The notes under the pieces are model-generated. The model was not told the origin of the DNA, made no database searches, and saw only the letters and a list, made by a program, of their open reading frames with translations. A stretch of 64,000 nucleotides of DNA from Macrostomum lignano (taxonomy: Eukaryota), in the NCBI GenBank assembly GCA_002269645.1, contig NIVC01000460.1, positions 62,001 to 126,000 of the forward strand, in the 5' to 3' direction. Below are positions 35,873 through 64,000 of this stretch, in pieces (the stretch's first letter is position 1; each line of letters begins with the position of its first letter). The position numbers and the translations under genes are program-made.

Positions 35873-39868
<3,996 letters not shown>

Positions 39869-39944
39869 TGCTGCTTGATGCCGGCTTTTTTAAAGCTGAG
39901 GAACATTTAGACAAGCGGACAGTAAGGGAGAAATATCCTTAGCG

Positions 39945-40410
39945 TTTGAGGATCTGGGATGCAGGCCCAGCAACTGGGGATCCGAGAGGCTGGCCCAGCA
40001 GCTGGGGATCTGAGAGGCTGGCCCAGCAACTGAGGATCTGGGAGGCTGGCCCAGCAACTGAGGATCTTGGAGGCTGGCCCAGCAACTGAGGATCTGAGAG
40101 GCTGGCCCAGCAACTGAGGATCTGAGAGGCTGGCCAAGCAACTGAGGATCTGGGAGGCTGGCCCAGCAACTGAGGATCTGAGAGGCTGGCCCAGCAACTG
40201 AGGATCTGAGAGGCTGGCCAAGCAACTGAGGATCTGGGAGGCTGGCCCAGCAACTGAGGATCTGAGAGGCTGGCCAAGCAACTGAGGATCTGGGAGGCTG
40301 GCCGAGCAACTGAGGATCTGGGAGGCTGGCCCAGCAACTGAGGATCTGGGAGGCTGGCCGAGCAACTGAGGATCTGGGAGGCTGGCTCAGCAACTGAGGA
40401 TCTGGGAGGG
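39945..40410. repeat. 28-bp minisatellite GGCTGGCCCAGCAACTGAGGATCTGGGA
   Basis: Direct reading. Confidence 0.95.
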
Positions 40411-40795
40411 CATGCTATAATATTTCCTGTTTTACAACAATAAATATTTGAAATTATTTCACAACGATGACAAATAATCGCTTTGGAAAAATCGATAAAA
40501 GAATCAATCATGTATTTAAAGTGAATGAATACCGTAGAGAAAGCAAAAATATTGGCAAACGTCTGAATAATATAACAATAAATTTTATCAAAAAAACCAA
40601 ATCTTAGGTCGAATGAATTAGAAGTTTTTTCGAAAATTGTTTTTATTAAAAACCAACAGAAAAAAAAATCAGACAGATATCAGAGAATAATTTAGATATA
40701 CGCGCAAACTATGCTACTGATTTTAGTAAAGTCAGTAGACAAAATAGGACATAACAACCGAAAGTTAATTGTTTAGAATGGAAAAACTGGATCGC

Positions 40796-43700
40796 TCACT
40801 CCACTCTGCTGTTGGCCTGCTGCTTCGCCCACTGCATTCTCCGCCCGGCCGAATCACATCCGGACACGGACGAGCCGTTGCCATTGTTTCCTAGCAATCG
40901 GAGTCTGGCCGCCTCATCTTCGGCCTTATGCAACGGATCGAGCATTTGAAGCCGAGTAAGGAGGCTGGATAGCTGCATCGGGGCCTGGCTTGAGTGAACC
41001 TGGATCCAGGGGGTGCGTTTAGGAAAGCAAACTGAAACTGATCTCGCCAATACTGAAAATGTGGTAGCCTTCCCGTCTCTCACTTCACATTCTTACCCTG
41101 GTTCCTTCCCTCTTTTTCCTCTTCCGCTTTACCCCCCACTTCCGCTCTCGACCCCTCACTTCCGCTCTCTACTCCTCACTTCCGCTCTCTACTCCTCACT
41201 TCCGCTCTCTACTCCTCACTTCCGCTCTCTACTCCTCACTTCCGCTCTTTAACCCTCAGTTCCGCTCTCTGCCCCTCACTTCCGCTCTCTACTCCTCACT
41301 TCCGCTCTCTACTCCTCACTTCCGCTCTCTACCCCTCACTCCCGCTCTCTACTCCTAATTTACTCTTCCCTTCCCTACCCTCTCATCCTCTCTCTACCTC
41401 TCATCCTCTCTCTACCTCTCATCCTCTCTCTACCTCTCATCCTCTCTCTACCTCTCATCCTCTCTCTACCTCTCATCCTCCTTTCTCCTCTTTCCTCTTG
41501 TTTCCTCTTTGCTCATCTTCCTTGCTATTTCCAGCATGCCTACCTTAGCCCATCTTCTCCTGGGCTCCAAATCTCCAAACTGTCGATAATTAGCCAACGT
41601 CTCGGCAACCTCGGCGTCTAGAGAGTTGCCACCAATAGCCGTGAGATTTCTCAGCTCGGCGTGGCAGACAACCAGCAGCCAGAGAGGCGAGCTGGCCAAC
41701 AGGCCCGCACTGCGGCTGCCGACAATCACTGGCACAAGGCAGCGCAGTTGAGTCAGACGAGAATTGCACTGCCGTTCAATCAGGCAGCGGCATAGATGGG
41801 CAACCCATTCGTTTCGATCGAATATGGCCACCGGCTCGTCTACGGGATAGTCAGAGCCTGCCAGAGACACGCGTGAGCATTTGTATTGATGAGTGCTGTG
41901 CCAACAAGTCTTATTGAATGTGTCTACCAATCGGAATTCGTGTCTGAAAGTACTTATATTTCTGACTGTTTTCTCACTCTCTTAGAAATAGAGCAGAGCA
42001 CCTTGCCAGTTCTTTTTGAGTGTCTGCTATAGTCTTGTTGAGCATCTCTTACATACATGCGCAACACCCGGCCGACCCGAAAAAATACAGACGTAATACT
42101 AATTAGATGACGAGGCATTTAGCCTTAATAAGACAGTTATAGTTACTCCTGTCATTTACCCAAAATTGCGTTAATTTTTGCTTTAGGGTTTCTTTCACAG
42201 GTAAATCGCATTTTTGGTCAAAAAGTAAGTCGCGCAGCCAGTGTAAATCAGGGAGGGGGGGGTTGCTCATGTATGATCTCTGTCAGTTTCTGAGTATCTA
42301 TAAGTCTTACCAACCTTACTTACCAGCCCTATTAAATGTCCATTAGAATGTCCACTAGGTGTATTTATCTTTAATTGTCTGTCAGTCTTTTTCTACCGCA
42401 CACAAGCTCCCGGCCCTAACCTTACCGAATTCTAAGTCATTTCTGTTTGCTCTTGTATTCTATTTGCATCTTAAAATTCTACATGCAAATCGTCCCAAAG
42501 TGCTCCGTTCCAAAACAGCGTGCTAGATTGTGTTAACTGAATTTTTTGCCGTCAAACTTCGTCCAAGAAATCTAGCTACTAGTCCAAGAAAGTTCTAGAT
42601 ATCCATGGCTCGGTTTGGCGGGTATGGTCGTCCCTCTATGCCCCGGTCCTTGCGCTGAGCTCCCTCATCTACTTAGTAACGACCCTCTCTAATTGGTCTG
42701 CCAACATAACACCCCTCTCAATGCACCTCTTAACATTTCAGCCTGTTTTCTACATTTAAAAATGCCTTTTCAACACTTTCAACACAAATTAGGAATGTTG
42801 TTTCACAGGTTGGATTGGCCGCCTTAGTGAAGGAGTCCCTCACAAGTCTCACAGCCAGTCAAGCGACTCTACAACTCTACAACTTAGCCAAAGCTTTCAC
42901 TATTTGGCTACAACAATTGACCATGCGACCTCCTATGCCGAATTGCTCAATCCTCTGGGACCGCCGCCCACTCCGGAGCCACCAGACCCCTTTGTGAACT
43001 ATAGGAGACAAATGCTTTGTGCCCGGCCAGGACCAGCCGCGTCCACGACGGCTCATCTTGCTCATGAACTACGCATCGACAAGCATACATCCAGTGTGCC
43101 AGTCATTCTGAGAGGTGGCATCAACTGCTCAGCTACGATCACAACTACAACCCCTGAGTCTGAGGAACTCAGCAACGGGAGCTTGCTTTATTTCAGATAC
43201 AACATAACGGGTGTCCCAAAAAAGGTCGAAAAAGGTTTAATCCAATACTGAAAAAAACTGTCTGCTCCTGTTTTCTAGCAACTGATAGTTGTGCTACATG
43301 ACTGATAGTCAACATTTAGAAGTTTTGTTCACTGCAGTTCTTAATTCGATTGGTGCAAGGCTATGGGTTAATGTGTTAATGCCACAGACCAGAGAATGCA
43401 GCGAGCAGTGAGAGAGTGACAGAGCAGTAGCAGCATCAGCAGCAGTTGCCTCGTGAAGCATTCACCCATTCTTACGATGGCGATTTCAGCCAGTTCTGAA
43501 TGCTGTTGCTCATGAACAGAAGCACCAATCGAAATGAGAACTGCAGGAAACAAAACTCCTGAGTGTTGACATCTAGTCAACTAGTGTTGACTAGACATCT
43601 TGTGTTGACATCTAGTGTTGACAAGCCAGTAAGTATAGCAACTATAGTTGCTATAGTTGCCAGGAAACAGGAGCAGAGAGTTTTGTACAGTATTGAATTA

Positions 43701-46575
43701 AAATTCGGCCTTTTTTGGGGCACCCGATATACAACTGGCGAAGAATAAAGCCAGTAAGTCGATTATATAATTGTACATGTAGTTCGAATTGAAGTGTTTA
43801 CTATGCAGGACAATTAGTCTATGGGCCAGGTCGCGAAATAGCACTATAAGTAAAAGAAAGTACTTTATCACTTCAGCTTAGCCATTCGCGCACTCCCTCT
43901 GCTGGTGTAAATTATCTATTAGGGCTCAAGCAAGGAGAAATCATGACGTCCGTTGCGTACCACAGCCTCAACTACACAATCGACAAGGTTGCCAAGTGGA
44001 TGGCCGCCTCTGACTCGCAGGTGTGCCTATTTGCAGACGACACCTCCGCTTCCACTCTGTCATCGCCGTCCATGACAACGAACACAACCGTCGAACAGGG
44101 CCGTCAGATGCTAATCGACCGGCTAAAATTTGACGCAGTGACTCGCATGAAGTCGCTGCTACGGAGCACAACTAATCAAGAGAATAATCACAACGAGTTC
44201 AAGAAAAAATACAGCGACAGGCGCGCCGCCGCCGTAGACGCGTGCTCTGACGACTCGCTGAACTGCAACCAGAACAACCGAGGCCGCGGCACTGAGGCAG
44301 AGCACCGGCGCAAGACGCACACGGACAGTCGGCACAGGCGCCAGTCGCAACCGTCCAACAGTCACTCGGTTGTCAAGCAGCGCCAGGACAGCGGCGACGG
44401 TAGCGGCGAGTTTAAAGAGGACAAGTACCTCGAGAGAATAATCGAACGGGCCACTCAAGAGATTCGGTCCGCAATTTACAAGCTCAGCGCCGAGAACAAG
44501 CTGCCAGAGAAGTGTCACCTGAAGATGAAGCTGTCAATCAAACCGCAGCAGACAGTCGGTGAGGTAAACAGCCCAATAGAAGAGACCGGACGACATCAAG
44601 GCGGCGGCCAGCCGGACAGTCGAGGCCACAGGGTCTCGAACTCTGGACGTCATCACAGGACATCGCAGAAAGACGACAGCGGCAGGCCACACCGGGAGAA
44701 GCGAGCTGCCTCGACGTCAAACAAGCGCGACCATCGAGAACAGAGGAAGGACAAACGGAAGCATTGAGTAGAAGGACCTTGTGGAGCTTTTATTAAACTA
44801 CTACCTTTGCATTGCTTTCATTCTTTGACACTAAAGCTATCTAAGCTATATAGCATTTTAATTGCTAAGCGCTACTTTACATTGAAGATCGGAACTTGGA
44901 CGGACGCCAGAGATACGTGCCCCAACAAACTGTTGTCAGTCGGCAACATGTCAATGGTAGCCTATTTTTAGTAACGCCATTTCGCAGCATGGCAACAAAG
45001 CTGAGAACAGTTTTTAGTTAATTCGGTTATTTAGTTAATAAATACACAATATTATATTAAAAGTGTCTTTTTGTTACAATTGACCAATGACGAATAGCAT
45101 AAATGAAAAATCAATGCATTAAGATTGTTCGTTACGTGAGTAGACTAAAATCCATCGTGCCGCTTCCCCTCAAGGCTGGTGTCGTCTATCAGTTCCGTTG
45201 CTGGTCAGAGTATTTCCTACTTGTGTATTGCGAGAACGAACAAATATGCAGCCGTATGCGTTTTACTTTTATGGCCGTATTGCCTTGAAAAGCCAGATTG
45301 CCCAGACTTGGGATATGGCATGCAGAAAGGCGACGCCAGCTCAGTCTAGGGTACCCGATGAAAACGGTACCCAGGCCAAGAAGCGTCCCGGAGTCACTAG
45401 CGTCGCTCCAGAGTCGTTTCAGATGCGTTGTAGATGACACAAGCAAATAGGAAAGAAGTGCTTCTAAACGACTCTAAAAGGACGACATGTCACGGTACAA
45501 GTCGCCAAAAAGTCCTCAGAGTCGCGCGACTCTAGTGACCCTGGGGCGACCGTATAACGACCCTAAGGCCGTAGAGTCCTATTTGATGCGTTCTAGAGTC
45601 GCATTAGAGTCGCTTTATGAAGCAGAGTCACATTTCCGGCGTTTCAGCGGCTTTCTGCAGTCGCTAAAAAGTCGCAGAAGAAGCGCTTTAGCGTCACTGT
45701 AGAATCGTTAGTGCATTACTTCTGAGGCGTTTTGGACTCGTTACAGTCTAATACCGGCCTTAAAAAGACTGCTGGAAATGCATGCTCAGTGGATGCATGC
45801 TCAAATGGAAATGCGACTCAGAAGTGATGCACTAACGATTCTATAGCGACGCTAAAAGAGCTTCTTCTGCGACTTTTTGGCGACTTGTATCGTGACATGT
45901 CGTCATTTTAGAGTCGTTTTAAAATCACTTCGCAAAGGGCGACGCAAGTGCTCACGTGGGGATTGTTGAGATGTCAAGGCTCACGTAGGGGGGGGGGGGG
46001 GTAGCTGAGATGTTAGGGCTTACGGGGGAATTCGCCGATATGTCAATTCTTACAAGGGTAATTGCTGAGGTTTTTGCAAGGAGAAGCTACATGTAGTTTA
46101 TTCAAAAATCTGTATTCCATTCATTGTTGGCTCCCCAACGGGGGGCGCTGATTGCCAGTATGGAAACTCGCATATCAGAGAAGTGCTTCCCGGAAGCCAA
46201 GCCTCGGGAAAAGGTGAGTTAGAGAAAACAATTAAATATTGGGGTCCAGGGTCCAAGCAAGCCATCAATGAATTAATAAGTGTCTAGCCCATCCTATTGA
46301 AAACATTGAAAGTTCAACTGACATGTGCGAATATCTGTGCAAACCTTACCCTCCACTCAGAAAATTAGAAAACCTTGCCTGTACGTCTGTCCTTCTCTGT
46401 CGGTCTGTCTGTTTGTCTGTCTCAGTGTCTGTCTACTGTCTGTCTGTCTGTCTGTCTGCCTGTCCTTCTGTCTGCCTGTCCGTCTATCCTTCTCTGTCGG
46501 TCTGTCTGTTTGTCTGTCTATCTGCCTGTCCTTCTGTCTGTCTGTCTGCCTGTCTGTCTGTCTGTCTGTCTTTCG

Positions 46576-46631
<56 letters not shown>

Positions 46632-49600
46632 GCCTGTCCTTCTGTCTGTCTGTCTGCCTGTCTTTCGGTCTGCCTGTCCTTTTGTCTGTCTGTCTGCCTG
46701 TCCTTCTGTCTGTCTGTCTGCCTGTCCTTCTGTCTGCCTGTCCTTCTGTCTGTCTGTCCTTCTGTCTGCCTGTCTGCCTGCCCGCCACGCCAAACCTACC
46801 CAGTTCAACGGCGCGCCGGCCGCAGGCCACAGACTGGGGATCCCAGTAGCCCCAGCACCAGGCGGGGGTGTCAGCAGACAGGCGCGTGAGCTGCAGGCTG
46901 CAGTCGGCAGCCCGACTAAAAAGCGCCAGGTTGCCGCGAAGGCCGCTGGTTGGTAGATCCGACGGGTCAATTTCGACCACCTAAAATCAGAAAGTTTAAT
47001 AAAAGGCAACTCATAAGAAGCAAAATTCTAGAAAAATTCCAGATTAAATACTCGTTAATTTCTTAGAAGCCTCCCTTAAGCCATATCTTAACCTCAACGT
47101 TCTCTACATGTATAATGTTTGGCCTACCAACAACTCCCAACGACCTTTGGTATCTGAGCAACCAAAATGAGCCACAGCATTTCAGCAATTCCCCTCGTGA
47201 ACATCAAACTCTCAGCAATCCCCCCGATGAGCCTTGACATCTCAGCAATTCCCCTCGTGAACATCAAACTCTCAGCAATCCCCCCGATGAGCCTTGACAT
47301 CTCAGCAATTCCTCATTGAGCCTTGACATCTCAGCAATTCCTCATTGAGCCTTGACATCTCAGCAATTTCCTATTGAGCCTTGACATCTCAGCAATTCCC
47401 CATTGAGCCTTGACATCTCAGCAATTCCCCATTGAGCCTTGACATCTCAGCAATTCCTCATTGAGCCTTGACATCTCAGCAATTCCCCATTGAGCCTTGA
47501 CTTGACATCTCAGCAATTCCTCATTGAGCCTTGACATCTCAGCAATTCCCATTGAGCCTTGACATCTCAGCAATTCCCCATTGAGCCTTGACATCTCAGC
47601 AATTCCTCATTTAGCCTTGACATCTCAGCAATTCCCCATTGAGCCTTGACATCTCAGCAATTCCCCATTGAGCCTTGACATCTCAGCAATTCCTCATTGA
47701 GCCTTGACATCTCAGCAATTCCCATTGAGCCTTGACATCTCAGCAATTCCCCACTGAGCCTTGACATCTCAGCAATGCCTCCATGAGTTGCTAAACTTGC
47801 AATTGTGATCACCTACCTGATCAAAGTCGGGTCCTTCGACCACATCCTCGCTATCGTTCTCGGCGACTCCAGCATCTGCACTGGCGCACCTGAGCAGCAC
47901 GGCCTGCCCAGACAGAGGCACTTTGGTTAGCAGGCGGCCCCCAGGCCCAAAGGCCAGCAGCTCAGCCCAGTAGGCCTGTGGCAGCAGAGAGGCGCCATCG
48001 CCAACAGCTGGCGGCAGGTGCGATTCAATTAGCGACCAATTTTCTCGCCACACTTCCGCAGTTAGCGAGCTGCAATTATCCAATTATTGATTACTAGACT
48101 GGGCAAATATACACTTACACTACTTTTCATATTCAGTAGTATAAATTCTTATTAAATTTAAATTTCTTTTGTTGAAACACTGCACCCAGTGATGTGTGAT
48201 TCTGTACTCTAAGTTAGAGATGAGAAGAGACAAGAGAAAACAGGTAAGATGGGAGATGATAGAAGAGAAGAGATCAGAGCAGATCAGAGGATAAAAGGCA
48301 AAGAGAAAAGAAGCGAGGGGATGAGAACAAAGATAAGAGGAGAGGAGAGAGAGAGAGAAGACGATGGGAAAGAGTGCGAGTGGAAGGGACCAGAAAAGAG
48401 ATGGAAACGGAATATAGAAAGGAAGGAAGCAGGTCAAGTGACAATCAGACAATAGAGGCAAACCAAGCTGCCTTACCCAAGCACAGCTTTGTAGAAATCT
48501 TCCTGACTTCCATCATGCAGCGGAGCCCGAAACGCCTCCCTCAGGCGTCGGGAATAATCGGCAGCCAAGCTGCTCAGACCATTAAACAGGCGCCTAGCAG
48601 CCAGCCGTCTGACATGAGATTGCAGCAGAACGGCGCAGGATTGCAATTTGGCTTGAGTTTGGTACAGGCCTAGCAGATGGCGATAGTGACAGAATACGAG
48701 CTTGGGGCCAAGCAGCAATGGCCCGTCTGAAAAATAGAAAGACGGAAAGACGACTTTGCGCGCTGCCTTCTTAGACCGCGAATCGTAGGACAAACTGCCA
48801 GGCCAAGTTTTGTGTGTGCTTCCTAATAATGATGGCCAATCCAGCTACCTGGGTGCGTTGGCACTGAGCAACACACTCTTATCCTACTCTGAGATTGATC
48901 TAAATTAATGGAAGTCTCACCATAAGATCGCTTGGCAATCCGTTTAACATAGGGGCCAGCCTTGACACAGGCCTGGCTACACTTCTCATCGGCACTAGCC
49001 TGACAGGCGCTCAACTGATCAGCCTTGGTGTACGGCAGAACAGCCTCCGAGAACGTGTTCAAAAGTCTATGCCTAGAGGTTGAACACTGGAACAAGCCGC
49101 AAGCTTTTACGGCGGCCAGTTGGCAAGCTCGAAGACGCAGCAACGCCTGCGAAGACGGCACCGAAAGTGACGGCAAGCGATCAACAAATAGCAGCTTGAC
49201 GCTGACGGACGCTGGCAAAGACGAGTCAGCGGTCAGGTTCAGCTGATCAGGATCTGTCAGCAGTGAAGTCAACAAAGTTAAACTGTGCGTAGCTAAGGTT
49301 GACGTTGCTTTCAACAGCTGTTGCTGTCTCAACAGCTGAGATGATTGTATGAGAAACACGCTGGCCGCTTCAGCCTCGTGTGGTGCCAGAGATGCCAGGC
49401 TGGCAAGACGATAAGTTCGAGTCCCCAGCCAGTGACGCACCTCGAGCAGCATCTGGGGAGATTAAGATGCAGAATCAAAATGTTAGATTTAGTTAAATCA
49501 ACTATTTGCGCAATCTGGCAGTAGCAACATCAACTACTGCCTCGCCTCAGTGCTCAGGCAATTCAGTCCGTTCCGCTGGCTCCTGAGCACATACAAGCGC

Positions 49601-51691
49601 GCCAATATTGTACACAGGCACGCACTCTCACAGCGGTGTACAGCGGCCCTGAAAATCTAATCGTCAGACATGTACACTCTGTGCCTTGGGGGTTGGCCCT
49701 CATGGCTGTTAATTGCAAAACCCCTGGCACAAGCCCCAAATAAATGTGAGCGCGCACGGATATCCTCTGGCCCCAACATCAACCATTCTCACTGACAATT
49801 TCATCAATCACAGTTTAATAACCTCCGAGAAAGTAATGCTCATCCGCTTCGAGCAAGAAACCCACCTGGTCAACACCGCCACCCTTGACCTTGGACAACC
49901 GAAACACATTCGAATCGGCCGAGCCAGCAGTCGCACTGGCGGACAATTTCTTAGCAGCCGCGACGGGATCGCCGCGTCCAAATGCCACACCCAAAAGCGT
50001 GGGAGCTTTGACGCTGCCCAACGATCGATAGGAGTCTATTAGAGCAGCGGATGGCGAGGCCGCCTCCGACGCTTCAGCGAAGCCCCTCGGAGCGAGCACC
50101 TCCGGCGCCAGCTTAACATAAGCCTCGCCTAGCAGAAGCAACGGAGTGGAAGATATCAGACGAGAACGAAGGCTGGCCAAGAGATCGCACAGATAATTGT
50201 ACTCGAAATTCAACGCATCCCGAGCAGCAGTTGAGGAAAAAGAGTCTGTTGCATCAGTCTGGCCTAGTAGTAGGTGAGTTGGCCCAATTAAAAATGTCAT
50301 TCGACCGCCATCTCCCGGACCAGCAACAACGTTTTCGCACAGCCGTCCACCAGCCAGTCTCTGATTTAGCCGGCCGACAACAAACTGCACTAATCGGCGA
50401 TAGATGGCTCGAACCATGCCGGCCAGTGCGGCGTTGCACTCTTCGGCTGTGCGATTGCGCAACGCTTTTCTGTGACCATCGCGCAGGACTTCGTATCTGC
50501 GTAGTGAGTTGGTTGATTGAAAGGAGAGGATATACAAGCGGAGCAAGAGGCTTAGTGTTTTTGTTTTCTAAACATTTAATACTTTTCTCCAAGGAAGAAC
50601 AGATTGATATGCTTAAAAAACACTATGCAGACGTTACAACCTAGAACATCCTATCCGGAGGCATGGACAAAGAATAATTGACCAAGAAACTAGATTTTAA
50701 TTACCGCAACACACCTGACAGTGACCTCGCGCATAAGCGACTCCAATTCTAAGCCGAGCATTTGAGCGACGCGTTCCAAATTTTCGTGCCGTTCAAACTG
50801 AACGCATTTTTTCGGCTTGCGTGGATCCGGAACCACGCGGACCAGACGTAGATGCAGGACGGCCGCGGCGCATCGATGAATAAAATCTAGATTCTCATCC
50901 GAGAATTCGAACAGTTTGGCAAGGCATCGGGCTACATTGATTTGCTTGAGACGATCGTCCGACATCAGCTCCGCGTAGGCGGGAGGACAAGCCATGGACA
51001 AAGCAATCTCGCTATCGTCAAGGTAGTAAGCAGCTCTGACAGACTCAGTAGCGTTCTCCATCAGCGAGTAGAAAAAGCAAAACGCAGTTAAATTTTCAGC
51101 TTCCAAGTCGTCGCGACCAAGCAAGCCGTAGCCCATCAGCCAGAGAACATCGTACTTAATGCTAATCAAATCGCCGTTCTCGTTGAAGTCAGCGTGCAGC
51201 ATTGTTACCGAATGGTTATCCAGCTCAACTCGATCACCTAGCTTTCGATAGACACAGGTGAACATGCGTACTAAGTCTAGGCTAGACTGAACTAGCGGAC
51301 GAGCAGACAGCATCGGAGCGTCCTTAGCAACCATATGAACCAGCTGCTGCAAGGCATCGGAATCGTTTATGGCTATCAATAAGGGCCGCGTGCCTAGCAA
51401 CAGATTCGGGTCCGACTTGCTGTACAATTGGCTCTTAGCGCAGGTGTAAAAGTTCACTAGCGTAGGCGCGTTGCAGCACGGATACCAGGTGCAATTAGAC
51501 GGTGTAGTTGCATCGAAGTCACCATCATCAACGCTATCATCAGCTGGCTGGTCGCCTAGCAACAGAGACTCTCCGCACCATTTTGAACGAACGGCTTCAT
51601 CGTCTGAAGCCAGCATTAAGTCGAGCAGCTGCTGTTCGGAGCGCCAATCGCCCAGTTCAAGGATATCCTTAGCCACTCTAGCAGTTGCCAT
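40796..51691 (-). CDS. Highly divergent myosin-like protein (degenerate motor, IQ motif, tail). Exons 51691-50715, 50496-49866, 49452-48849, 48726-48477, 48069-47817, 46980-46800; tentative tail exons ~43.5 kb, 41943-41544, 40999-40796
   Basis: Ordered myosin-head landmarks: MLHADFNENGDLISIKYDV (..QF...G.L.GA.I..Y), FCFFYSLM (HIFYQL), IHRCAAAVLHL (IFRILAAILHL), VAQMLGL..ESL...VT.R, EECNAALAGMVRAIYRRLVQFVVGRLNQRL (QA..ARDAL.K.+Y.RLF.W+V..IN..L), EVRHWLGTRTY (..HYAG.V.Y), LRACQL, LLGPKLVF (.GKTK+F), then IQ motif LQSHVRRLAARRLF. The first six exons join in phase. The link into the last exons is not fully resolved. Confidence 0.7.
41130..41480. repeat. 20-bp CTCACTTCCGCTCTCTACTC and 18-bp CTCTCATCCTCTCTCTAC arrays
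   Basis: Direct reading; fill the last intron of the myosin-like gene. Confidence 0.9.
42099..42225 (-). pseudogene. Degraded 28S (LSU) rRNA fragment
   Basis: Minus strand GGGTAAATGACAGGAGTAACTATAACTGTCTTATTAAGGCTAAATGCCTCGTCATCTAATTAG versus conserved eukaryotic 28S GGGTAAACGGCGGGAGTAACTATGACTCTCTTAAGGTAGCCAAATGCCTCGTCATCTAATTAG. Strong for 42099-42161, weak beyond. Confidence 0.75.
43943..44767 (+). CDS. Intronless 274-aa charged hypothetical protein nested antisense in an intron of the myosin-like gene
   Basis: Non-repetitive GC-rich 825-bp ORF with AAATCATG start context, an AG acceptor just upstream, and ATTAAA (~44792) / AATAAA (~45037) downstream. No recognised domain. Confidence 0.55.
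   Translation: MTSVAYHSLNYTIDKVAKWMAASDSQVCLFADDTSASTLSSPSMTTNTTVEQGRQMLIDRLKFDAVTRMKSLLRSTTNQENNHNEFKKKYSDRRAAAVDACSDDSLNCNQNNRGRGTEAEHRRKTHTDSRHRRQSQPSNSHSVVKQRQDSGDGSGEFKEDKYLERIIERATQEIRSAIYKLSAENKLPEKCHLKMKLSIKPQQTVGEVNSPIEETGRHQGGGQPDSRGHRVSNSGRHHRTSQKDDSGRPHREKRAASTSNKRDHREQRKDKRKH
45455..45931. repeat. Composite long inverted repeat (MITE/foldback-like remnant)
   Basis: 45818-45885 is the reverse complement of 45660-45727, and 45871-45931 is the reverse complement of 45455-45514. Confidence 0.8.
46385..46780. repeat. (CTGT)n degenerate microsatellite
   Basis: Direct reading. Confidence 0.95.
47180..47776. repeat. ~29-bp minisatellite GAGCCTTGACATCTCAGCAATTCCCCATT
   Basis: Direct reading. 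Confidence 0.95.
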
Positions 51692-52375
51692 GCTGTTGGT
51701 TTGTTAGCTGTGCGTATATCTAAGCGCACCTGCGTGGTTTTTCTTCTTTGGCTTCTAATTTTCCAAGAATACTTGAAGGCTTGGTCTTTAGCCAAGGAAC
51801 AAATGCATTTCTTTATATAAGCGTTCATGGCCAGCAAGTCTACCTCGCACCTCTCTCTTGTCCACAAGGTTGCTTTAAAAAAGACAGATAAGAAATCGTA
51901 ACTAAAAGTTTAACTAACTGCCTAAAAGTTTGAGCAAGAGCAAATGAAATATTTGAAAAAATTCAGCCCGACGTTATCGTACCTAATAATAAAGCTAAGC
52001 CTAACCTAAAACTAAACCTAAAATTTCGTTCTACACACTAAACACTAATGCCTACTTTAATTACGCACTCATTACTTGTTGAAAATGACAATAGAACGCA
52101 AATAAATTAACTTTAAGCATTAGTTCTCAACGCATCAAATAAGAAAAGTTGAAACATCAGTTATTATTGTATTTTTCAACACTTGAAATCTAGCAATAAA
52201 CAGCATATTCTACAAACATTTGGCAGCAAACACACAACAAGCATCGAACAGTACGCACGCAGTAACCTCCCATTTCCAAGTAAACTACATACCGAATATA
52301 ATAAAGGCCGCATCCAATCAAACAGTACTAGAACAATAAATGAAATAGATTATTTAATTAAAATTCAACTGCAAA

Positions 52376-55300
52376 TTAGAACCCCTCTCCGGCAGACACC
52401 TCAGTTTCAACGTTTGCTTCTTCATCGGTTGAGGAGGCAGCGTTAAGATGAGCATTAACCAGAGTGAGCAGCACCGGATACACCGCAGCGTATTCACGGA
52501 CACCTCTGGCCTGAGCAGACTTGGCGTAGGCAACCAGGGTGCCCTGGATGAAGCGGAGCCGGTCAGACTCTTCGGGATAATCCAACAGCCAGGATACGTA
52601 CCGGCTTACCTGGAGTTGGATGGTGGGTAGGGGATTAGAGATATGAGATAATATGGGGTCTCTGTGACATACTTGTAGATAAGGGCGATTCTAGATGGGA
52701 TTAAAGGGCGATTCTGGTGGGCGGTTCTAGATGGGAGTAAAGGGCGGTTCTAGTGGATTAAAGGGCGGTTCTAGATGGGAGTAAAGGGCGGTTCTAGTGG
52801 GGATTAAAGGGCAATTCTAGTGGGGATTAAAGGGCGGTTCTAGATAGGATTAAGGAGAACTCTAGATTTTAGTGGGGATTAAAGGGCGATTAAAGATGGG
52901 ATGAGGGCGGTTCTAGATGAGATTAAAGGGCGATTCTAGGTTGGATTAAAGGGCGATTCTAGATTGGATTAAAGGGCGGTTCTAGATGGGATTAAGGAGA
53001 ACTCTAGATTCTAGATGGGATGAGGGCGGTTCTAGATGAGATTAAAGGGCGATTCTAGGTTGGATTAAATGGCGATTCTAGATTGGATTAAAGGGCGATT
53101 AAAGATGGGATGAGGGAGGTTCTAGGTTGGATTACAGGGCGATTCTAGGTTGGATTACAGGGCGATTCTAGATTGGATTAAAGGGCGATTATAGATGGTA
53201 TCTTGGCGGATCTAGTGGGGATTAAAAGGCAATTCTAGCGATCCTGGATTGCGATTAAAGGAAAATTCTAGCAGCATATTCCCAGAGAAAATTCCCTCAA
53301 AACTACTCACCGACCAGCCAGCCGCAGTGTGAGGCGATTGCATATCAACCGGGGCCCTAGAGAACAGGAGGTGAGCCACCAGGCTGGCGGGCAGGGCCTC
53401 CCCAATAGAGGGATTATTGGCCACGTGATGAGCCGATTGAAACAGCAGCGGCCTAAACGCCCTCAATCGTCTGTAGTGCTGGCCAAGGTCGGACATCCTC
53501 CGGCACAGAGGCGACAGGGCCAGCTCTAATTGGGCGCAATCGGCGGCCAATCGGAGTCGGCCAGACTCGGCCAGAGGCCGCACCAGGCTGGCCAATAGGA
53601 GGAAGACTTCGATACACTGGCACGCGATTGGCTGCAGGCTGGTGTACAGGAAATCGCGCTGGCGATAGCTGGCCAAGTATAGCTGGGCTACGCGGCTGAC
53701 AAAGTCCTGCTCGAAGTAAGGGGTCAACCGGTTTAAGAATAAGCCTTTTTTTGCCGACCGTCCTTCGTCATCCTAGTCTCTCCCACTCTACCCTGTCTCC
53801 CTCTCTACCCTGTCTCCCTCTCTACCCTGTCTCTCCCACTCTACCCTGTCTCTCCCACTCTACCCTGTCTCCCAACTCTACCCTGTCTCTCCCACTCTAC
53901 CCTGTCTCCCTCTCTACCCTGTCTCCCTCTCTACCCTGTCTCTCCCACTCTACCCTGTCTCTCCCACTCTACCCTGTCTCTCCCACTCTACCCTGTCTCC
54001 CAACTCTACCCTGTCTCTCCCACTCTACCCTGTCTCCCTCTGTACCGTCTTCCACTCTACCCTGCCTCCCACTCTACCCTGTCTCCCCACTCTACCCTGT
54101 CTCCCCACTCTACCCTGTCTCTCCCACTCTACCCTGTCTCTCCCACTCTACCCTGTCTCCCCCACTCTACCCTGTCTCTCCCACTCTACCCTGTCTCCCC
54201 ACTCTACCCTGCCTCCCACTCTACCCTGTCTCTCCCACTCTACCCTGTCTCCCCCACTCTACCCTGTCTCCCCACTCTACCCTGCCTCCCACTCTACCCT
54301 GTCTCTCCCACTCTACCCTGTCTCCCCCACTCTACCCTGTCTCCCCACTCTACCCTGTCTCCCCACTCTACCCTGTCTCCCCACTCTACCCTGTCTCCCC
54401 ACTCTACCCTGTCTCCCCACTCTACCCTGTCTCCCACTCTACCCTGTCTCTCCCACTCTACCCTGTCTCTCCCACTCTACTCTGTCTCTCCCACTCTACC
54501 CTGCCTCCCACTCTACCCTGTCTCCCCACTCTACCCTGTCTCCCCACTCTACCCTGTCTCTCCCACTCTACCCTGTCTCCCCCTGTACCGTCTCCCACTC
54601 TACCCTGTCTCTCCCACTCTATCCTGTCTCTCCCACTCTACCCTGTCTCCCCCACTCTACCCTGTCTCCCCCACTCTACCCTGTCTCCCCCACTCTACCC
54701 TGTCTCTCCCACTCTACCCTGTCTCTCCCACTCTACCCTGTCTCTCCCACTCTACCCTGTCTCCCCCACTCTACCCTGTCTCTCCCTCTCTACCCTGTCT
54801 CCCCACTCTACCCTGTCTCTCCCACTCTACCCTGTCTCCCACTCTACCCTGTCTCCCACTCTACCCTGTCTCTCCCACTCTACCCTGTCTCCCCCACTCT
54901 ACCCTGTCTCTCCCTCTCTACCCTGTCTCCCCACTCTACCCTGTCTCTCCCACTCTACCCTGTCTCCCACTCTACCCTGTCTCTCCCACTCTACCCTGTC
55001 TCTCCCACTCTACTCTGTCTCTCCCACTCTACCCTGTCTCCCCACTCTACCCTGCCTCCCCACTTTACCCTGCTCCCCACTCTACCCTGTCTCCCCAACT
55101 CTACCTATGTCTAAAGTCTACCCTCTCCCCAATTAATATTTGAGCTTTCAGACCAACAGACCTGCAATTCTCTCATATAGAGTGAGCACTGCTGCTGCTG
55201 CTGCTGTTGCTGCTGCGCTTGTTGCGAAGGCTGATCAAATCGTTCCTGATGCATTGTCAGAAGAATCGCTTCCAAACTATCTTGAACGGAACCTAGCAAC

Positions 55301-58300
55301 GGTTCCAAAGTTTGAGTCATTAATTGGCGCAATTCGGCCAAACTTCCGTCCAACAGGGAGACGGCGTTGTCCGGCAAATCAGCGGATAGCAGGGCCGATC
55401 GAAGATCCTGGCTCAGATGGCCAAGCATGTTTACTAGACTAGCGTTTGTCTGCAAGTTAAGTGTTGGGTAAACGGCTGGGGTAACTATGTATTTTATTGG
55501 ATAACAAAATACCTCGGCATCGTTTTAGTCGATAAAGTATAATCGGAAACAAAAAGTACAGATTTATAAGTCACCTGTTGCCCTTCAGTAGGCGGCCCCA
55601 GCACCTGACTCGCAGTGGCATCCGCCACTCTGGTAGCTTCAGCTTTGCGGCAGACAAACTGCACAGTTTTCACCACATTCTTGGCAATCTTCAGCAGCAG
55701 ATCTTGGTCAACCTGGGTGAATGTCAACTCTGACGTCATGGCTTCGACTATTCGGCGAATTTCGATTTCACTGTTCAATGATTTCTGGCCGCCGCTGAAC
55801 ATGGCGTCCACTGGGTCGAACAGGCGGCTGAGGGATCTGGGAGAAAGTTTATCGAAGGGACATTTTTAGTGACTCGATGGCGCAAACAAACAAAACTCTA
55901 AAACTAGGTGTCACAAACTCCCCCCTCACAGAATGTCAGGAAAAGACCAAGACAATAATGCGAACAAAAGACTTAAGTATGAGCCAATGTGTTCCAATGA
56001 ATCTTGTCTTGTTGGTATCGTGACAATTAAGAGTCAATTTTCAACGGGTGCGACACTAAGTCACAATGGTGCAATCAGTGTAACAAACCCTGTCACAAGC
56101 GTGCAATCAGTGTGACACATCCTGTCACAAGCGTGCAATCAGTGTGACACGTCCTGTCACAATGGTGCAATCAGTGTAACAAACCCTGTCACAAGCGTGC
56201 AATCAGTGTAACAAACCCTGTCACAAGCGTGCAATCAGTGTGACACATCCTGTCACAAGCGTGCAATCAGTGTGACACATCCTGTCACAAGCGTGCAATC
56301 AGTGTGACAAACCCTGTCACAAGCGTGCAATCAGTGTGATACATCCTGTCCCAAGCGTGCAATGTTGCAGGTTTTCCAAGAGACCAAGAAACACCATTGA
56401 CTCAATAAAAAACTAGTTAATGCATAAAGTAAAGAGCAAACCTGGACAGGTAGGCGGCCTCAAAGCTAGCCAGATGAGCCCGACCCAACAGCGGCAATTC
56501 TTCGTCAACAGCCGCTAATCTAGTTGACAAATCATTGGCCGATTTCAACAATCGCGGATATTCGCCTTCGAATGCGTGCTTTAAAAATGCGGACGCGCTG
56601 GCAGCGTTGGCCAGGCTGTCGCGCAGACAGTCGGACAACCAGTCGGCAAATCCGGCCGGGCTGATGGCTTCGGACGCGGCCGGTGACAGCAGGTCGGACA
56701 GGGGTCGCTGAGTGTTTGGGTCGCGTTTTTTAGCCAAAATGCGACGCAGACTGGCCAGAAACTGGGCGCCAGAAATGGCCTCCTCGTTGAGGGCGTCCAG
56801 GCCGGACCAGAGGGCCTGGGAGTAGGCGGCCGACTGGCCCGCTGGCAGGTTGGCGCGGCCGGGCGGGCCTCCGCCGCCACCGGAGCCGCTGCGGGTTGCG
56901 AGATTGGGTTGTAGGGGGGGGGGAGGTGAGATCAGCTACCGTGGAGAGATTCAACTATATGAGAATGCATGAGATTTCAATACAAGGGGTGATATTCGGT
57001 TATAAAGGGATGAGATTCTGTTATAAGAGGACGAGATTCTGTCATTAGGGGATGAGATTCTGTTACAGGGAGATGAGACTCTAAGGGGATGAGGTTCTGT
57101 TATAAGGGGATGAGTTTCGGTTATAAGGGGATGAGTTTCGGTTATAAGGGGATGAGTTTCGGTTATAAGGGGATGAGTTTCGGTTATAAGGGGATGAGTT
57201 TCGGTTATAAGGGGATGAGTTTCGGTTATAAGGGGATGAGTTTCGGTTATAAGGGGATGAGTTTCGGTTATAAGGGGATATTCTGTTACAAGGAGATGAG
57301 ATTCTGTTAAAAGGGGTGAGGTTCTGATATAAGGGGTGAGGTTCTGATATAAGGGGTGAGGTTCTGATATAAGGGGTGAGATTCAGTTATAAGGGGTGAG
57401 GTTCTGATATAAGGGGTGAGATTCTGTTATAAAGGGTGAGGTTCTGATATAAGGGGTGAGATTCTGTTATAAAGGGTGAGGTTCTGATATAAGGGGGTGA
57501 GATTCTGATATAAGGGGATGAGATTCAGTTATAAGGGGATGAGATTCAGTTATAAGGGATGAGATTCGGTTATAAGGGATGAGATTCTGTTAAAAGGGGT
57601 GAAGTTCTGATATCAGGGATCTGTTAAAAGTTGCGCCACGAGGCAGATTTGGTTTCAAGGATGGTAAGATTGAAAATCTCACTCTAACTACTTGCTAACC
57701 TTGCTTCTCACCTTCCATAAGCAGCCTGTCCGGACCCGCTCACAAACGGAGTCTTCTGCATGAGCGAGGACATGTCCAGAGCCGAGCGGATGCGGGTTCG
57801 CAGGTCGGATCTGACCCGGCCGGCCAGGTCAACAATGCAATCGTCCAGCCGGCCAAGGCAGAATACGGCGTGTAGGCAGGTCGCCAGTTGGGGATGCGGA
57901 GCGCCGGACGCAGCGACCGAGCCAACCTGAAATCGTTTTTAGACAGCCACTGAACGTAAATGCCAGATTAACCTAGCAGAGGAAAAAGTAATAATTTTTT
58001 ACCCTAGCAACGGGAGACATTATCTCTGCAGTTAAATCTCACCCCCTCATAACCGAATCTCACCCCTCATAACCGAATCTCACCCCCTTATTAATAACCG
58101 AATCTCATCCCCTTATAACAGAATCTCACCCCTCATAACCGAATCTCACCCCTCATAGCCGAACCTCACCCCTCATAATCGAATCTCACCCCTCATAACC
58201 GAATCTCACCCCTCATAACCGAATCTCACCCCTCATAACCGAATCTCACCTCCCTCATAACCGAATCTCACCTCCCTCATAACCGAATCTCACCCCTCAT

Positions 58301-60276
58301 AACCGAATCTAACCCCCCTTATTAATAACCGAATCTCATCCCCTTATAACAGAATCTCACCCCTCATAATCGAATCTCACCCCTCATAACCGAATCTCAC
58401 CTCCCTCATAACCGAATCTCACCTCCCTCATAACCGAATCTCACCCCTCATAACCGAATCTAACCCCCCTTATTAATAACCGAATCTTATCCCCTTATAA
58501 CAGAATCTCACCCCTCATAACCGAATCTCACCCCCTCATAACCGAATCTCACCACTCATAACCCAATCTCCGCCCTAAACAGAATCTCACCCCTTATAAC
58601 AGAATCCCACCCCTTAACAGAATCTCACCCCCTCATGACCAAATCTTACCCCATAATTATTGAATCTCACCCCTCAAAACCGAATCTCGTATACTCATAA
58701 CTGAATGTCACCACCCTTATTAATCTCACACCATATGATTGAAAATTTACTGCCTAATTTACCCTAGCAACGGGAGACATGGTTGCTTGTTTACCCTTGC
58801 GACTGGAAAATCATTGATTATGTATCCTAGCAACAGGAAATATATACTGATTACCCTAGCAACGCGAATGAGATTGTTTATTAATTTACCCTGGCCACAC
58901 AATTGAAGCTTTCTGTTTACATTAGCAACAGCAACTCACTGCGCTTGAAGAGCCGATTCCGCGAGCATCTACCAGCAGGGCGGTGGCCCGCGTCTCCGCC
59001 GCCTCGCGCCAACGGGCAAAGCGCCGATGCTCCCTCTCTAGCGCGTGCACTCCGCGCCAATCCAAGCCGGAGAATTGGTGGCCCAGATCGCCCAGAGTCT
59101 GCGCCACTTTGCCCAGCTGATCCTCCGGCAAGGTGGCAGCCTCTTCAACCCCGGCCGCCGGCTGCGGCGGCAGCTTCTTGGCCAGAGCGAAAATTCGACC
59201 CGACCGGCGCAGGAAATCACAGGCCGATTGAACCCGGCGCAGATGGAGAACCCGCTGCTCAAGCCTGGCGTACGGCTCCCCGATCCTGGCTCGAATCTTT
59301 TTTAATCCCTGCAGCAGGGCGTCTGTTCGAGACTGGACTACGGAGAGCACGGATTCCAATGTGTCAATGCCGCTGGCTCGGGACAGAAGGTCTTTGTGAT
59401 GACGGACCACGTGACGCTCGATGTCGCTTTCGAGCCTGCTCAATGAGTAGGGACAGGCTCTTTCACTCTCACTGAAGCTTCCCATACCCTCAGTGAAGCT
59501 CTTTCACTCTCACTGAAGCTTCCCATACCCTCAGTGAAGCTCTTTCACTCTCCCCGAAGCTCTCGATACTCTCCCTGAAGCTTCATTACTCTCCCTGAGC
59601 TCCATTACTCTCACTGAAGCTCCCCATACTCTCACTGAAGCTCCTCATACTCTCACTGAAGCTCCCCATACTCTCACTGAAGCTCCCCATACTCTCACTG
59701 AAGCTCCCCATACTCTCACTGAAGCTCCCCATACTCTCACTGAAGCTCCTCATACTCTCACTGAAGCTCCCCATACTCTCACTGAAGCTCCCCATACTCT
59801 CACTGAAGCTCCCCATACTCTCCCTGAAGCTCCTCATACCCTCATTGAAACTCACTACTCATTTCAAAGATTTTCTACTCTCCCTGAAGTTCCAAAAATC
59901 TTCCTGAAGCCCTTCAATCATCCTGAAGCCCTTCAATTATCCTGAAGCCCTTCAATCATCCTGAAGCCCTTCAATCATCCTGAAGCCATCATTCTTCTTG
60001 AATCCCTTTTACTTTCCTTGAATCCAAGTTTCCCTTAGTCCAGTACCCATAAATAATACTTCTTCTTGTACTCTACTATATTAAATGAAATAGTCAGACT
60101 ATTTTTGTTAGTAACAATAAAACTAATCAAGCAACTCACTTTCCAATGCAGGCGTCAATCTTTTCAATAACCTCGCTAACAACTTGGGTTTGCAGCACAT
60201 TGATAGCGAATGATTTCTCATCGAAACTGTCACCTTCAAACACTGCCAAAAAATTGTCTGCTTCTTCGCCGTTCAT
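52376..60276 (-). CDS. COG5: Conserved oligomeric Golgi complex subunit 5, 821 aa. Exons 60276-60140, 59435-58940, 57926-57712, 56888-56442, 55827-55575, 55449-55162, 53706-53311, 52609-52376
   Basis: Motifs HVVRHHKDLLSRASGIDTLESVL..VQ.R, L.RVQSACDFLRR..RI..LAKKL, GPPGRA.LP, LAKKRDP, FEGEYPRLL, FEAAYLSRLFDPV..MF, ASQVLGPPTEGQ, CSLYMRELQDFVSRV, LVRPLAESGRLRLAADCAQLELALSPLCRR.SDLG..YR.LRAFRPLLFQ, SPH...GWS.SRYVSWL..Y.EE.DRL.FI.GTL..Y. All seven GT-AG junctions are phase-consistent (total 2466 nt). Confidence 0.93.
52680..53240. repeat. ~23-bp minisatellite TTCTAGATGGGATTAAAGGGCGA (COG5 intron 7)
   Basis: Direct reading. Confidence 0.9.
53765..55130. repeat. 17-20-bp minisatellite CTCTACCCTGTCTCCCCA (COG5 intron 6)
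   Basis: Direct reading. Confidence 0.95.
56085..56362. repeat. 32-bp hairpin-containing minisatellite GTCACAAGCGTGCAATCAGTGTGACACATCCT (COG5 intron 4)
   Basis: Direct reading; TGTCACA...TGTGACA inverted pair inside each unit; no unique spacers. Confidence 0.9.
56990..57610. repeat. 20-21-bp minisatellite AAGGGGATGAGATTCTGTTAT (COG5 intron 3)
   Basis: Direct reading. Confidence 0.95.
58030..58700. repeat. 20-21-bp minisatellite ATAACCGAATCTCACCCCTC (COG5 intron 2); reverse complement of the 56990-57610 family
   Basis: Direct reading and manual reverse complement. Confidence 0.95.
59460..59990. repeat. 21-bp ACTCTCACTGAAGCTCCCCAT and 19-bp CCTGAAGCCCTTCAATCAT arrays (COG5 intron 1)
   Basis: Direct reading. 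Confidence 0.9.
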
Positions 60277-61457
60277 TTGTATTAGTATTGATCTGAATTA
60301 GCAATTTATGAGTAGTTTATCAATTACACTCATTTGACTAAGATCTTTTCAACAGAAGTAAAAATAATAAAAAAACATGTGTTATTTAATGTTATTTACT
60401 CTCATCTGAAAGTTTACATGGTAGTGGCAGCAAACTACTACTTTTAGTAACCAAACAAAAAAGTTACAAAATTTATGGGATTTCATTTATAATTCTTTAA
60501 GCTTATTTAATCTGATATACTCAGTAAGTATATGTAGCCTTCTTAGAAATATTGATAGTTTATTAAATAAATTTGTTTGCTACTTTAGGAACTAAAAAAA
60601 TCAAATTTTGAATTGGTATTGATATTGAATATCCCTACAACCAATTTGAGCAGCTTCACTTTATAGAGCAAAGCATCTTGAATCTGGCAAAAAAAAGCCT
60701 GAAACAAAGTAGATCCTTTAGAAATGAGACTATATTGCTGCATAAAAATATTTGTTAGTTCCCTTGTATAGACTACTTGGCTATGAATCTAAATATACTT
60801 CTATCTCAGAAAGGGAAACTTGACAAACAATTCTAATCAAGTGGCACATTTGTTAAAATTGATAGTTTAAAGAAACTAAATAGCAAATTTAAATTTAGCC
60901 AGAGTCAAATTCATTATGCTACTTCTCAATCCAAGCCATACATAACCTCTAAAACTAAACTATACTAGCTATAACTTATTTATGATTGAAAATATGAATT
61001 CATTTGCAACTCAAAAAAACAAAATAAAAATATCTAATTCATTGTTTAAAAACTGTCAAAAAACCCACTATATAGAAATTAAACATTTGAAGATTCAAAT
61101 TGGGTTTTTAGTATTTTATAACAAATTCACCAAAACAATTTATATGTTGCACATATTAGAGAAATAAAATATAGGTCCTAGCATAGCTAAGCATATGAGT
61201 AACAAATCTACTAAATTCAAGACCCAAATAAATGTTCCAAAAAGATGACCAGTACAGCTAAAATATCTATAAGTATATATCTTAGCCAATTGCCATACTT
61301 GAAAATTTATTCTAATAAGACCTTTAACCATTTTGCTAAAATCTATTATATATTTACCTTTTCAAAGCCAACTCATTTTTCAAAATTCAAAATTCAAATC
61401 CAAATATCTTAACATGTTTCCAAATGTAAGCAAAAAGTAAAAAGTAAATGGCAAGAG

Positions 61458-63352: not shown

Positions 63353-64000
63353 TGGCAAGAGTAACAATAACACTTTTAAGTTATGATTAGGCCCAATACT
63401 TAAACAATGATTACCTTAAAATATTATTGCAACTTTAGGTTTAATGCCCTAAAGGTCCCAAAGTAAATAACTTTATTTAATAAAACTTTTTAACTATATG
63501 TTACTTTAAAACTTACAATTGTAAAATGAAAAAAAAACACTAAATTTTACCTTTTTAATTCTTAATTTACTAGCCTAATTAATTTCCTATTTCAAAAGTT
63601 TTATTTCTTAAATGTTTGCATTTGTTTTGGTTTCTTGATTTTTTTAGATTTGGAAGCACATTAAAAATATTTGGAAAGAGTTTTTGAATCCAAAACATTT
63701 ATATTTTTAAAAATAAAACATTTTTTCATTTTAGTCATAGATTTCAAATTCAAATCCAATATTGGATCCATCACTATTTATTGAATATTAATACTAGTAA
63801 GGAGTCTAATAAAAACTTATTTTTTGGAGCAGTTAGAAAGTGGTCTGATAACTGATATATTATGGTTAAAATATAATTGGTCTAAGATATGATAATGAGC
63901 TTAGGCCTTTATTTATTGAAAAAGGAAAAAATCATTTTTAAATCATGTAGGCCTACACAAGGCATCAGGCTTTGGCAAGCACTTGGTAATTTCTTAGCAG

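Follow-up and report, generated by a model that had tools for sequence, protein, structure and literature searches.

We describe here a myosin-like gene on the minus strand of a 64,000-nucleotide stretch of the genome of the flatworm Macrostomum lignano (positions 62,001 to 126,000 of contig NIVC01000460.1, assembly GCA_002269645.1), which we analysed as a whole, refer to as the window and use for the numbering of all positions. The window is eukaryotic, rich in tandem repeats and has roughly 50% G+C. The product of the gene, P0001, is deposited in GenBank as the 1113-residue 'hypothetical protein BOX15_Mlig023546g3' (PAA82636.1) and bears the UniRef name 'Myosin motor domain-containing protein'. 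That the gene is myosin-derived, that it is catalytically dead and that it is maintained are each very probable, and we favour, with reasonable confidence, the reading that it is an expressed protein-coding gene that descends from a whole myosin head and neck and has decayed in place to a pseudo-motor.

Myosin remnants and their origin

The Pfam profile Myosin_head (PF00063), a search proposed in a preliminary description of positions 46800-51691, passes its cut-off with 43.3 bits against a gathering score of 33.3 (E = 2 × 10−11) and matches aa 203-375 through profile positions 190-357 of 679, or ~25% of the profile (Table 1). Weak matches to myosins II, VI, Ic and XV in the Protein Data Bank (PDB) cover the same stretch. 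When the whole protein is compared by hhalign with an alignment of 15 myosins, it is co-linear from aa 9 to 751 (columns 18-784) with a probability of 96.6% and an E value of 5.5 × 10−10, and aa 201-375 alone reach E values of 1 × 10−11 to 6 × 10−15 against a profile of 52 myosins. As the flanks are not significant when run separately, the signal of the whole protein comes entirely from this core, which corresponds to the upper-50K subdomain.

Structure prediction singles out the same region. AlphaFold2 with an alignment of 22 sequences yields a mean predicted local distance difference test (pLDDT) score of 44.7 and is confident at aa 204-375 only, and with 88 sequences the mean is 48.7, with aa 174-377, including two beta-strands that precede the core, at 61-97, the core itself (aa 203-375) at 80-97, and aa 500-560 at 54-77, where a three-stranded sheet occupies the position of the myosin 'HYAG' segment (aa 503-556). 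Foldseek searches of the PDB return myosin motor domains only (E values of 1 × 10−8 to 1 × 10−10), and roughly a quarter to a third of the motor domain is thereby modelled as myosin-like. In myosins, the upper-50K subdomain bears the cardiomyopathy-loop hairpin and loop 4 of the actin interface. Both AlphaFold models predict a hairpin at aa 325-340 with high confidence, and we make no claim about the conservation of cardiomyopathy-loop residues because three alignments differ in register there.

Beyond the core, several features argue for descent from a whole head: the lengths of the flanks, a hairpin resembling the HYAG segment, the placement of an IQ-like motif and core borders that lie inside exons 1 and 2 and not at exon borders. 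There are 202 residues ahead of the core where the profile has 189 positions, and 370 residues from the core to the IQ-like motif where it has 322. The HYAG-like hairpin follows the end of the core by ~170 residues, roughly as in myosins; its sequence, LLEVRHWLGTRTYR, is placed identically by all three alignments used for placing motifs (hhalign, and MAFFT with 88 and with 22 sequences) and is predicted as beta-strands (pLDDT 75-77). In an ungapped scan with position-specific scoring matrices (PSSMs) of myosin blocks, only those within the core fell at their expected places with confidence (FHIFY at aa 200, LHLGN at 271 and RDALAKA at 349); outside it, the HYAG block fell at its expected aa 538 with a score that is not significant, and the switch I block was second-best at aa 166. 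The IQ pattern [ILVF]Qxxx[RK]xxxx[RK] occurs at aa 748-758, preceded by a stretch (GPKLVFCHYRHLLGL) that resembles GxTKVFFRAGxLAxL, and 1.1% of shuffled sequences place one within aa 700-790. The IQ motif of the preliminary description is therefore present as a pattern, and it stays below the Pfam cut-off for IQ (12.2 bits against 20.3).

Several results weigh against whole-head descent or against a functional reading of the protein. Run alone against the 52-myosin profile, the flanks give hhalign E values of 0.8 (aa 1-200) and 0.17 (aa 376-760). Compared with the matching halves of the profile, aa 1-200 reach a z-score of 0.28 and aa 376-745 one of 0.89, scores equalled or exceeded by 37 and 17 of 100 shuffles, respectively, and separate scans of aa 1-205, 376-745 and 746-1113 find no Pfam match at E ≤ 10. 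All other regions of the models, including the tail, lie below pLDDT 50, and the Foldseek template modelling (TM) scores, normalized to the myosin targets, are 0.18-0.27 with root mean square deviations of 15-30 Å. Because the AlphaFold alignments consist of ordinary myosins, the models are not independent proof of the fold, just as low confidence elsewhere does not prove a different one. No orthologue beyond M. lignano emerged from an exhaustive HMMER scan of 1.84 billion cluster representatives. Finally, the two copies of the gene compared below show neutral-like change in aa 376-745 (8 nonsynonymous to 3 synonymous substitutions) and differ by 29 substitutions only, so their ratio of nonsynonymous to synonymous rates (dN/dS) is noisy.

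An alternative is that a myosin-head piece of ~200-250 residues was captured by an unrelated or newly arisen coding sequence, in which case this gene would never have held a whole head with eroded motifs and the motif equivalences drawn here would be meaningless. The shuffle-like flanks and their low pLDDT, the failure of most motif blocks to appear at expected positions and the conflict between alignment programs over the P-loop site and the C-terminal half all speak for such a capture. Against it stand three co-linear elements at myosin-like spacing, namely the core, the hairpin and the IQ-like motif (the last with p ~ 0.01), flanks with the lengths of those of a full head, and the mismatch between core and exon borders. 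We regard capture as unlikely, and between these two origins whole-head descent is the one we would prefer. The order and spacing of myosin-head motifs seen in the preliminary description have statistical support for aa 203-375 only, aa 1-200 and 376-745 being shuffle-like; about 60% of the head and the whole tail do no better than shuffled sequence. Its fold landmarks are likewise supported for about a quarter of the head, the AlphaFold-confident and myosin-like aa ~174-377 and 503-556, with Foldseek TM scores of 0.24-0.27 relative to the myosin targets and deviations of 15-17 Å, the remainder being below pLDDT 50.

Gene model and transcript evidence

From the translated three minus-strand frames and their splice sites we derived six phase-consistent GT-AG exons between 51691 and 46800, and the resulting product of 941 residues equals residues 1-941 of P0001 at 100% identity. 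The full coding sequence comprises eight GT-AG exons on the minus strand, from 51691 to 40796, and its translation matches PAA82636.1 exactly, which bears out the intact, stop-free and phase-consistent exons of the preliminary description. The range given there, 46800-51691, takes in exons 1-6 only, and a tail motif quoted as part of it, AIFDRNEWVAHLCRCL, is in fact encoded at 41828-41781 in exon 7, ~5 kb outside. For exon 2, another possible donor, at 49823, was discarded as out of phase with exon 3, whereas the donor at 49866 fits the GenBank protein. Gene models of this assembly rest on genome-guided RNA-seq transcript assemblies alone, to which TransDecoder open reading frames (ORFs) were assigned (PMC5730564), so the exon chain is a transcript model and not an ab initio guess. 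The gene ids Mlig023546 and Mlig034240 occur in none of the searchable main texts or of the paper supplements covered, and no expression or functional data were found.

The model could be partly artefactual, with exons 7-8, and with them the quoted tail, being part of a read-through or polycistronic precursor that also takes in the downstream acyl-CoA oxidase (ACOX) gene, and with the mature protein ending differently. One transcript model, P0003, which the HMMER search also returned, links exon 8 to ACOX coding exons; the locus suffix 'g3' marks a gene cut from a multi-gene transcriptional unit (PMC5730564), precursors of such units make up ~7% of M. lignano transcripts (PMC5730564), and intron 6, between exons 6 and 7, spans 4.9 kb and holds a nested gene. 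Against this, the splice sites that join exons 6 and 7 are canonical and preserve the phase, exons 7-8 are 99.5-99.7% identical between the two copies of the gene (99.7% for exon 7) compared to 84-96% for flanking intron sequence, and the same eight-exon structure was annotated independently in both copies. We consider an artefact of this kind improbable. P0003 itself starts in exon 8 (~40796-40998, minus strand), shifts to the +1 frame, uses a GTGAG donor on the stop codon and splices into acyl-CoA oxidase at ~39900; it resembles a read-through or polycistronic precursor of the type described for M. lignano transcriptional units.

Selection on two recent copies

A second locus (L001, contig NIVC01000930.1) encodes a protein of 1114 residues, P0002, and shares with the window the gene order COG5, myosin-like gene, acyl-CoA oxidase; large recent duplications are known in the DV1 line (PMC5730564). 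Exon identity between the loci is 97.3-99.7% (exon 1 is free of indels and has 8 mismatches over 977 nt), and the coding sequences differ by 29 substitutions in 3342 nt (0.87%), of which 12 are synonymous and 17 nonsynonymous (dN/dS 0.47, binomial p = 0.04). Divergence reaches 3.5% in introns 1-4, with 7 indel events in 1209 nt, and 2.2% in the non-repeat part of intron 6, with 16 in 3830 nt, so that exons carry 2.5-4 times fewer substitutions (Fisher p = 6 × 10−9 for introns 1-4 and 6 × 10−6 for intron 6). The single exon indel, in frame and of 3 nt, lies in exon 6; intronic rates would have led to 19 or 14 across the exons (Poisson p = 8 × 10−8 and 1 × 10−5). By region, the nonsynonymous to synonymous counts are 4:6 in aa 1-375 (p = 0.02) and 5:3 in neck and tail, too small, together with those of aa 376-745, to separate regions (Fisher p = 0.2).

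The reading frame is clearly maintained, and the divergence between these two recent gene copies shows that selection keeps both intact, in agreement with the preliminary description of an intact gene and not a pseudogene (0.87% in exons compared to 2.2-3.5% in introns, and one in-frame indel). Constraint on the amino acids seems moderate, perhaps with most of it in the N-terminal third: dN/dS, which the preliminary description proposed as a check and which is taken here against the duplicate, points to constraint overall and in aa 1-375, and the neutral-like aa 376-745 do not follow.

The same figures bear on the idea of a transcribed, decaying myosin pseudogene whose ORF is open only through recency. 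The loss of every catalytic motif, a dN/dS of 0.47 overall and about 0.9 in aa 376-745, substitutions spread near-evenly across codon positions (12, 7 and 10) and the lack of an orthologue elsewhere would all suit it. Yet an ORF of 1113 codons and eight exons is intact in two copies whose introns are 2-3.5% diverged with many indels, exon substitutions lie well below those of introns, and the lone in-frame indel would be a chance event of 1 × 10−5 to 8 × 10−8; the sequence itself seems to have diverged far past what an unselected ORF would survive, and we consider the pseudogene very improbable.

Loss of the nucleotide site

The myosin consensus comprises the P-loop GESGAGKT (Walker A), switch I NxNSSRFGK and switch II DIxGFE. 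None of the patterns G....GK[ST], [AG]xxxx[AG]K[ST], GK[ST], N.N.SR, SSR, SRFG and D..G.E occurs in the protein, whereas control myosins carry all of them, nor in any minus-strand frame of 40000-53000, so an exon that had been missed can be ruled out. The loss of all three nucleotide-site motifs in the preliminary description is thus upheld, and a hidden exon that would restore the P-loop or the switches, raised there as a refutation, was rejected on the scan of these three frames.

Placing the vanished motifs is less straightforward. The strings originally equated with them exist, as PLLIAINDSDAL (aa 103-114, for the P-loop), DRVELDNHSV (aa 153-162, switch I) and LIGPTHL (aa 394-400, switch II), but the first two are probably ~10-25 residues off. 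The P-loop placement is unstable: in two of the three alignments (hhalign and MAFFT with 88 sequences) PLLIAINDSDAL falls on the 'PHIFAIADxAY' helix and the P-loop site is a partly deleted ~MLS-ARP (aa 127-132), whereas MAFFT with 22 sequences sets GESGAGKT on GTRPLLIA (aa 100-107). All three choose HADFNENGD for switch I, and for switch II they agree on HLLLGQ (aa 400-405), immediately past the string first named, as the counterpart of DIxGFE, with Asp, Gly and Glu all replaced. The Gly of codon 100 (51392-51394), which one alignment equates with the first P-loop Gly, is Cys in the duplicate, so this position is not conserved even between copies that are 99% identical.

As no alignment retains the Walker Lys/Thr, the Ser/Arg of switch I or the Asp/Gly/Glu of switch II, the loss of myosin-type ATP binding and hydrolysis is, as judged from these residues, well supported. 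A still-active motor or ATPase that uses non-canonical nucleotide-binding residues finds no supporting point in these analyses and has a negligible probability, given that there is no Walker A-like pattern even when loosened to [AG]xxxx[AG]K[ST], no GK[ST], and no alignment that keeps the switch residues.

Distribution and possible role

Among 5.8 billion proteins, a word-indexed search recovered this protein and its 99% duplicate and nothing else. The HMMER matches beyond these are weak (E values of 1 × 10−5 to 6 × 10−4), join aa ~200-385 to ordinary myosins and come from a chrysophyte, metagenomes, a stick insect and an ichthyosporean; with no orthologue among the representatives searched, the lineage-specific class suggested in the preliminary description is consistent with the data. 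The best sequence matches are to classes II, VI, Ic and XV and the best fold matches to II, X, XV, XI, I and PfMyoA, a spread over so many classes that no parent class can be named. A tail of the TH1 or PH type was rejected: aa 746-1113 have no Pfam match to Myosin_TH1 or PH at E ≤ 10, and both AlphaFold models render the tail as low-confidence coil and helices with no beta-rich domain, leaving the TH1 resemblance noted in the preliminary description unsupported.

On the reading of a decayed whole head, the recognizable remnants would stand in myosin order, namely the upper-50K subdomain with its two preceding beta-strands (~174-377), the HYAG hairpin (~503-556) and the IQ-like helix (748-758), and the N-terminal subdomain, the lower-50K/relay, the converter-equivalent stretches and the 350-residue tail would have lost resemblance to anything. 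With its nucleotide-site residues gone, the protein presumably cannot cycle. The upper-50K subdomain appears to be the part that selection and modelling single out; its preserved face could be a contact surface for actin or some other partner, with a calmodulin-type light chain perhaps bound to the IQ-like helix and specificity perhaps supplied by the orphan tail. Tentatively, we see the likeliest role as that of a nucleotide-independent module for binding or tethering, perhaps on actin and perhaps with such a light chain; the actin-binding or scaffold function suggested in the preliminary description is plausible. Still more speculative is a stand-alone, minimal pseudo-myosin of animals, a new myosin-derived family in which selection would have kept the actin-facing upper-50K subdomain, part of the transducer sheet and the light-chain helix, with the rest of the head rebuilt as new sequence, and which would serve the Macrostomum lineage as a nucleotide-independent tether of actin or other filaments.

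If functional, the protein would show how far a P-loop motor can be dismantled with one subdomain still under selection, and would offer a natural minimal construct for the role of the upper-50K subdomain without nucleotide control. It would add an animal case to the dead myosin domains of fungal chitin synthases and to class XVIII myosins, a wider weight that is limited by its occurrence in a single species and by the fact that pseudo-enzyme evolution in motors is already recognized.

Features of the locus and its neighbourhood

Table 1 Features of the myosin-like gene (window positions)
Feature	Positions	Strand	Remarks
Exon 1	50715..51691	-	aa 1-325 plus 2 nt; ATG at 51691; donor CAG|gtgtgt; identical to P0001
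Exon 2	49866..50496	-	aa 326-536; acceptor cgcag|A; donor CAG|gtgggt
Exon 3	48921..49452	-	aa 537-713
Exon 4	48477..48726	-	aa 714-796; carries the GPKLVF... stretch and the IQ-like motif
Exon 5	47817..48069	-	aa 797-881
Exon 6	46800..46980	-	aa 882-941; last exon in the range first described; donor CTGG|gtaggt, phase 1
Exon 7	41543..41857	-	aa 942-1046; beyond the range first described; contains AIFDRNEWVAHLCRCL
Exon 8	40796..40998	-	aa 1047-1113 plus stop; joined in P0003 to the downstream acyl-CoA oxidase gene
Sole statistically supported myosin segment (upper-50K subdomain)	50349..51085	-	aa 203-375; spans intron 1 (50714-50497)
P-loop-equivalent region, both candidates	51284..51397	-	LGTRPLLIAINDSDAL (aa 99-114) and PMLSARPLVQS (aa 126-136); no glycine-rich loop, no Lys-Thr pair
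Switch I-equivalent region	51170..51235	-	DRVELDNHSVTMLHADFNENGD, aa 153-174; NxNSSRFGK on HADFNENGD (aa 166-174) in all three alignments; only Gly kept
Switch II-equivalent region	50268..50300	-	MTFLIGPTHLL, aa 392-402; aligned hexamer extends to aa 405
Hairpin site	49408..49449	-	LLEVRHWLGTRTYR, aa 538-551; at the 'FxIxHYAGxVxY' position; best PSSM match for that block, not significant
IQ-like motif	48593..48625	-	LQSHVRRLAAR, aa 748-758; preceded by GPKLVFCHYRHLLGL

The ORF nested in intron 6 (43943-44767, plus strand) encodes 274 residues that are basic and Ser-rich, with no Pfam family. At the duplicate locus, a called gene of the same size and place lies at L001 17404-18228, and the two copies differ unusually little in the intron around the ORF (divergence of 0.6-1.6%, with 0-1 indel per 500 nt). 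A (GTCT)n-type microsatellite immediately follows the exon 6 donor (46396-46780), and the intron microsatellite holds long artefactual ORFs open in several frames. Intron 5 contains about 20 copies of a 29-bp tandem repeat (47210-47784) and measures 836 nt here compared to 1356 nt at the duplicate locus, so the repeat copy number differs.

Upstream, the exons of a COG5-like gene occupy about 53212-59485 on the minus strand, and about 73 copies of a 19-bp tandem repeat at 53776-55105, apparently in an intron of this gene, yield a spurious plus-strand ORF of 461 residues. Downstream, two repeats break up the acyl-CoA oxidase exons (38001-39900, minus strand): (AGAC)n at 39352-39494 and an array of 24/36/60-bp repeats at 38001-38770. 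Both ends of the window (1-2000 and 60001-64000) are AT-rich, with a G+C fraction of 0.27-0.30 against about 0.50 elsewhere.

Comparison with known myosins

Among described proteins, close in state are the fungal class VII (also called VI) chitin synthases (CHS-7/CsmB; class-17B), in which the P-loop and both switches are likewise gone: CHS-7 has a shorter myosin motor-like domain with none of the three sites (PMC7389182), and Kollmar and Muehlhausen set class-17B aside as 'divergent' (PMC5583752). Class-17B is fungal, fused to a chitin synthase and without an IQ motif. In the flatworm, the protein is not a fusion: Pfam scans show no chitin synthase domain in it, and it combines an IQ-like motif with an orphan tail; the two are independent losses and not a shared family. 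Among the sequences of the survey are myosins in which ATP hydrolysis, the relay, actin binding or the converter is disrupted (PMC5583752), a description that the flatworm protein fits, and the main text of the survey names no flatworm example.

Class XVIII (Drosophila myosin-18, mammalian MYO18A/B) resembles the flatworm protein in having a head that is not an ATPase motor and serves as an actin tether or scaffold (PMC3122231). Drosophila myosin-18, which has no ATPase activity, nonetheless keeps a near-consensus P-loop, GRSGAGKS, and recognizable switches (PMC3122231). This agrees with the statement in the preliminary description that class XVIII retains more of these motifs; complete loss is known as well, from fungal CHS-7 (PMC7389182). 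Class XVIII also has a full-length head with PDZ and coiled-coil regions, whereas the flatworm protein has no motif and matches ~25% of the head profile, and Pfam gives it Myosin_head and a weak IQ only, with no PDZ or other domain. The near-consensus P-loop, PDZ/KE N-terminal extension and coiled-coil tail described for the class (PMC3122231) are all missing from it.

Dachs, an unconventional myosin of Drosophila (class XX), offers a parallel in its head, neck and short tail unlike other proteins and in its lineage restriction; its head is full, and it is taken to be a myosin that produces force (PMC3696060). No specific sequence affinity of the flatworm core was found, its best matches being unrelated myosins of an alga, an insect and an ichthyosporean, and the tail has no demonstrable likeness to the TH1 tail of myosin I. 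As fully dead myosin motor domains have already been described in fungi, the flatworm case introduces no new principle; it is a new, more extreme and differently built dead motor, a stand-alone animal protein with an IQ-like neck and an orphan tail.

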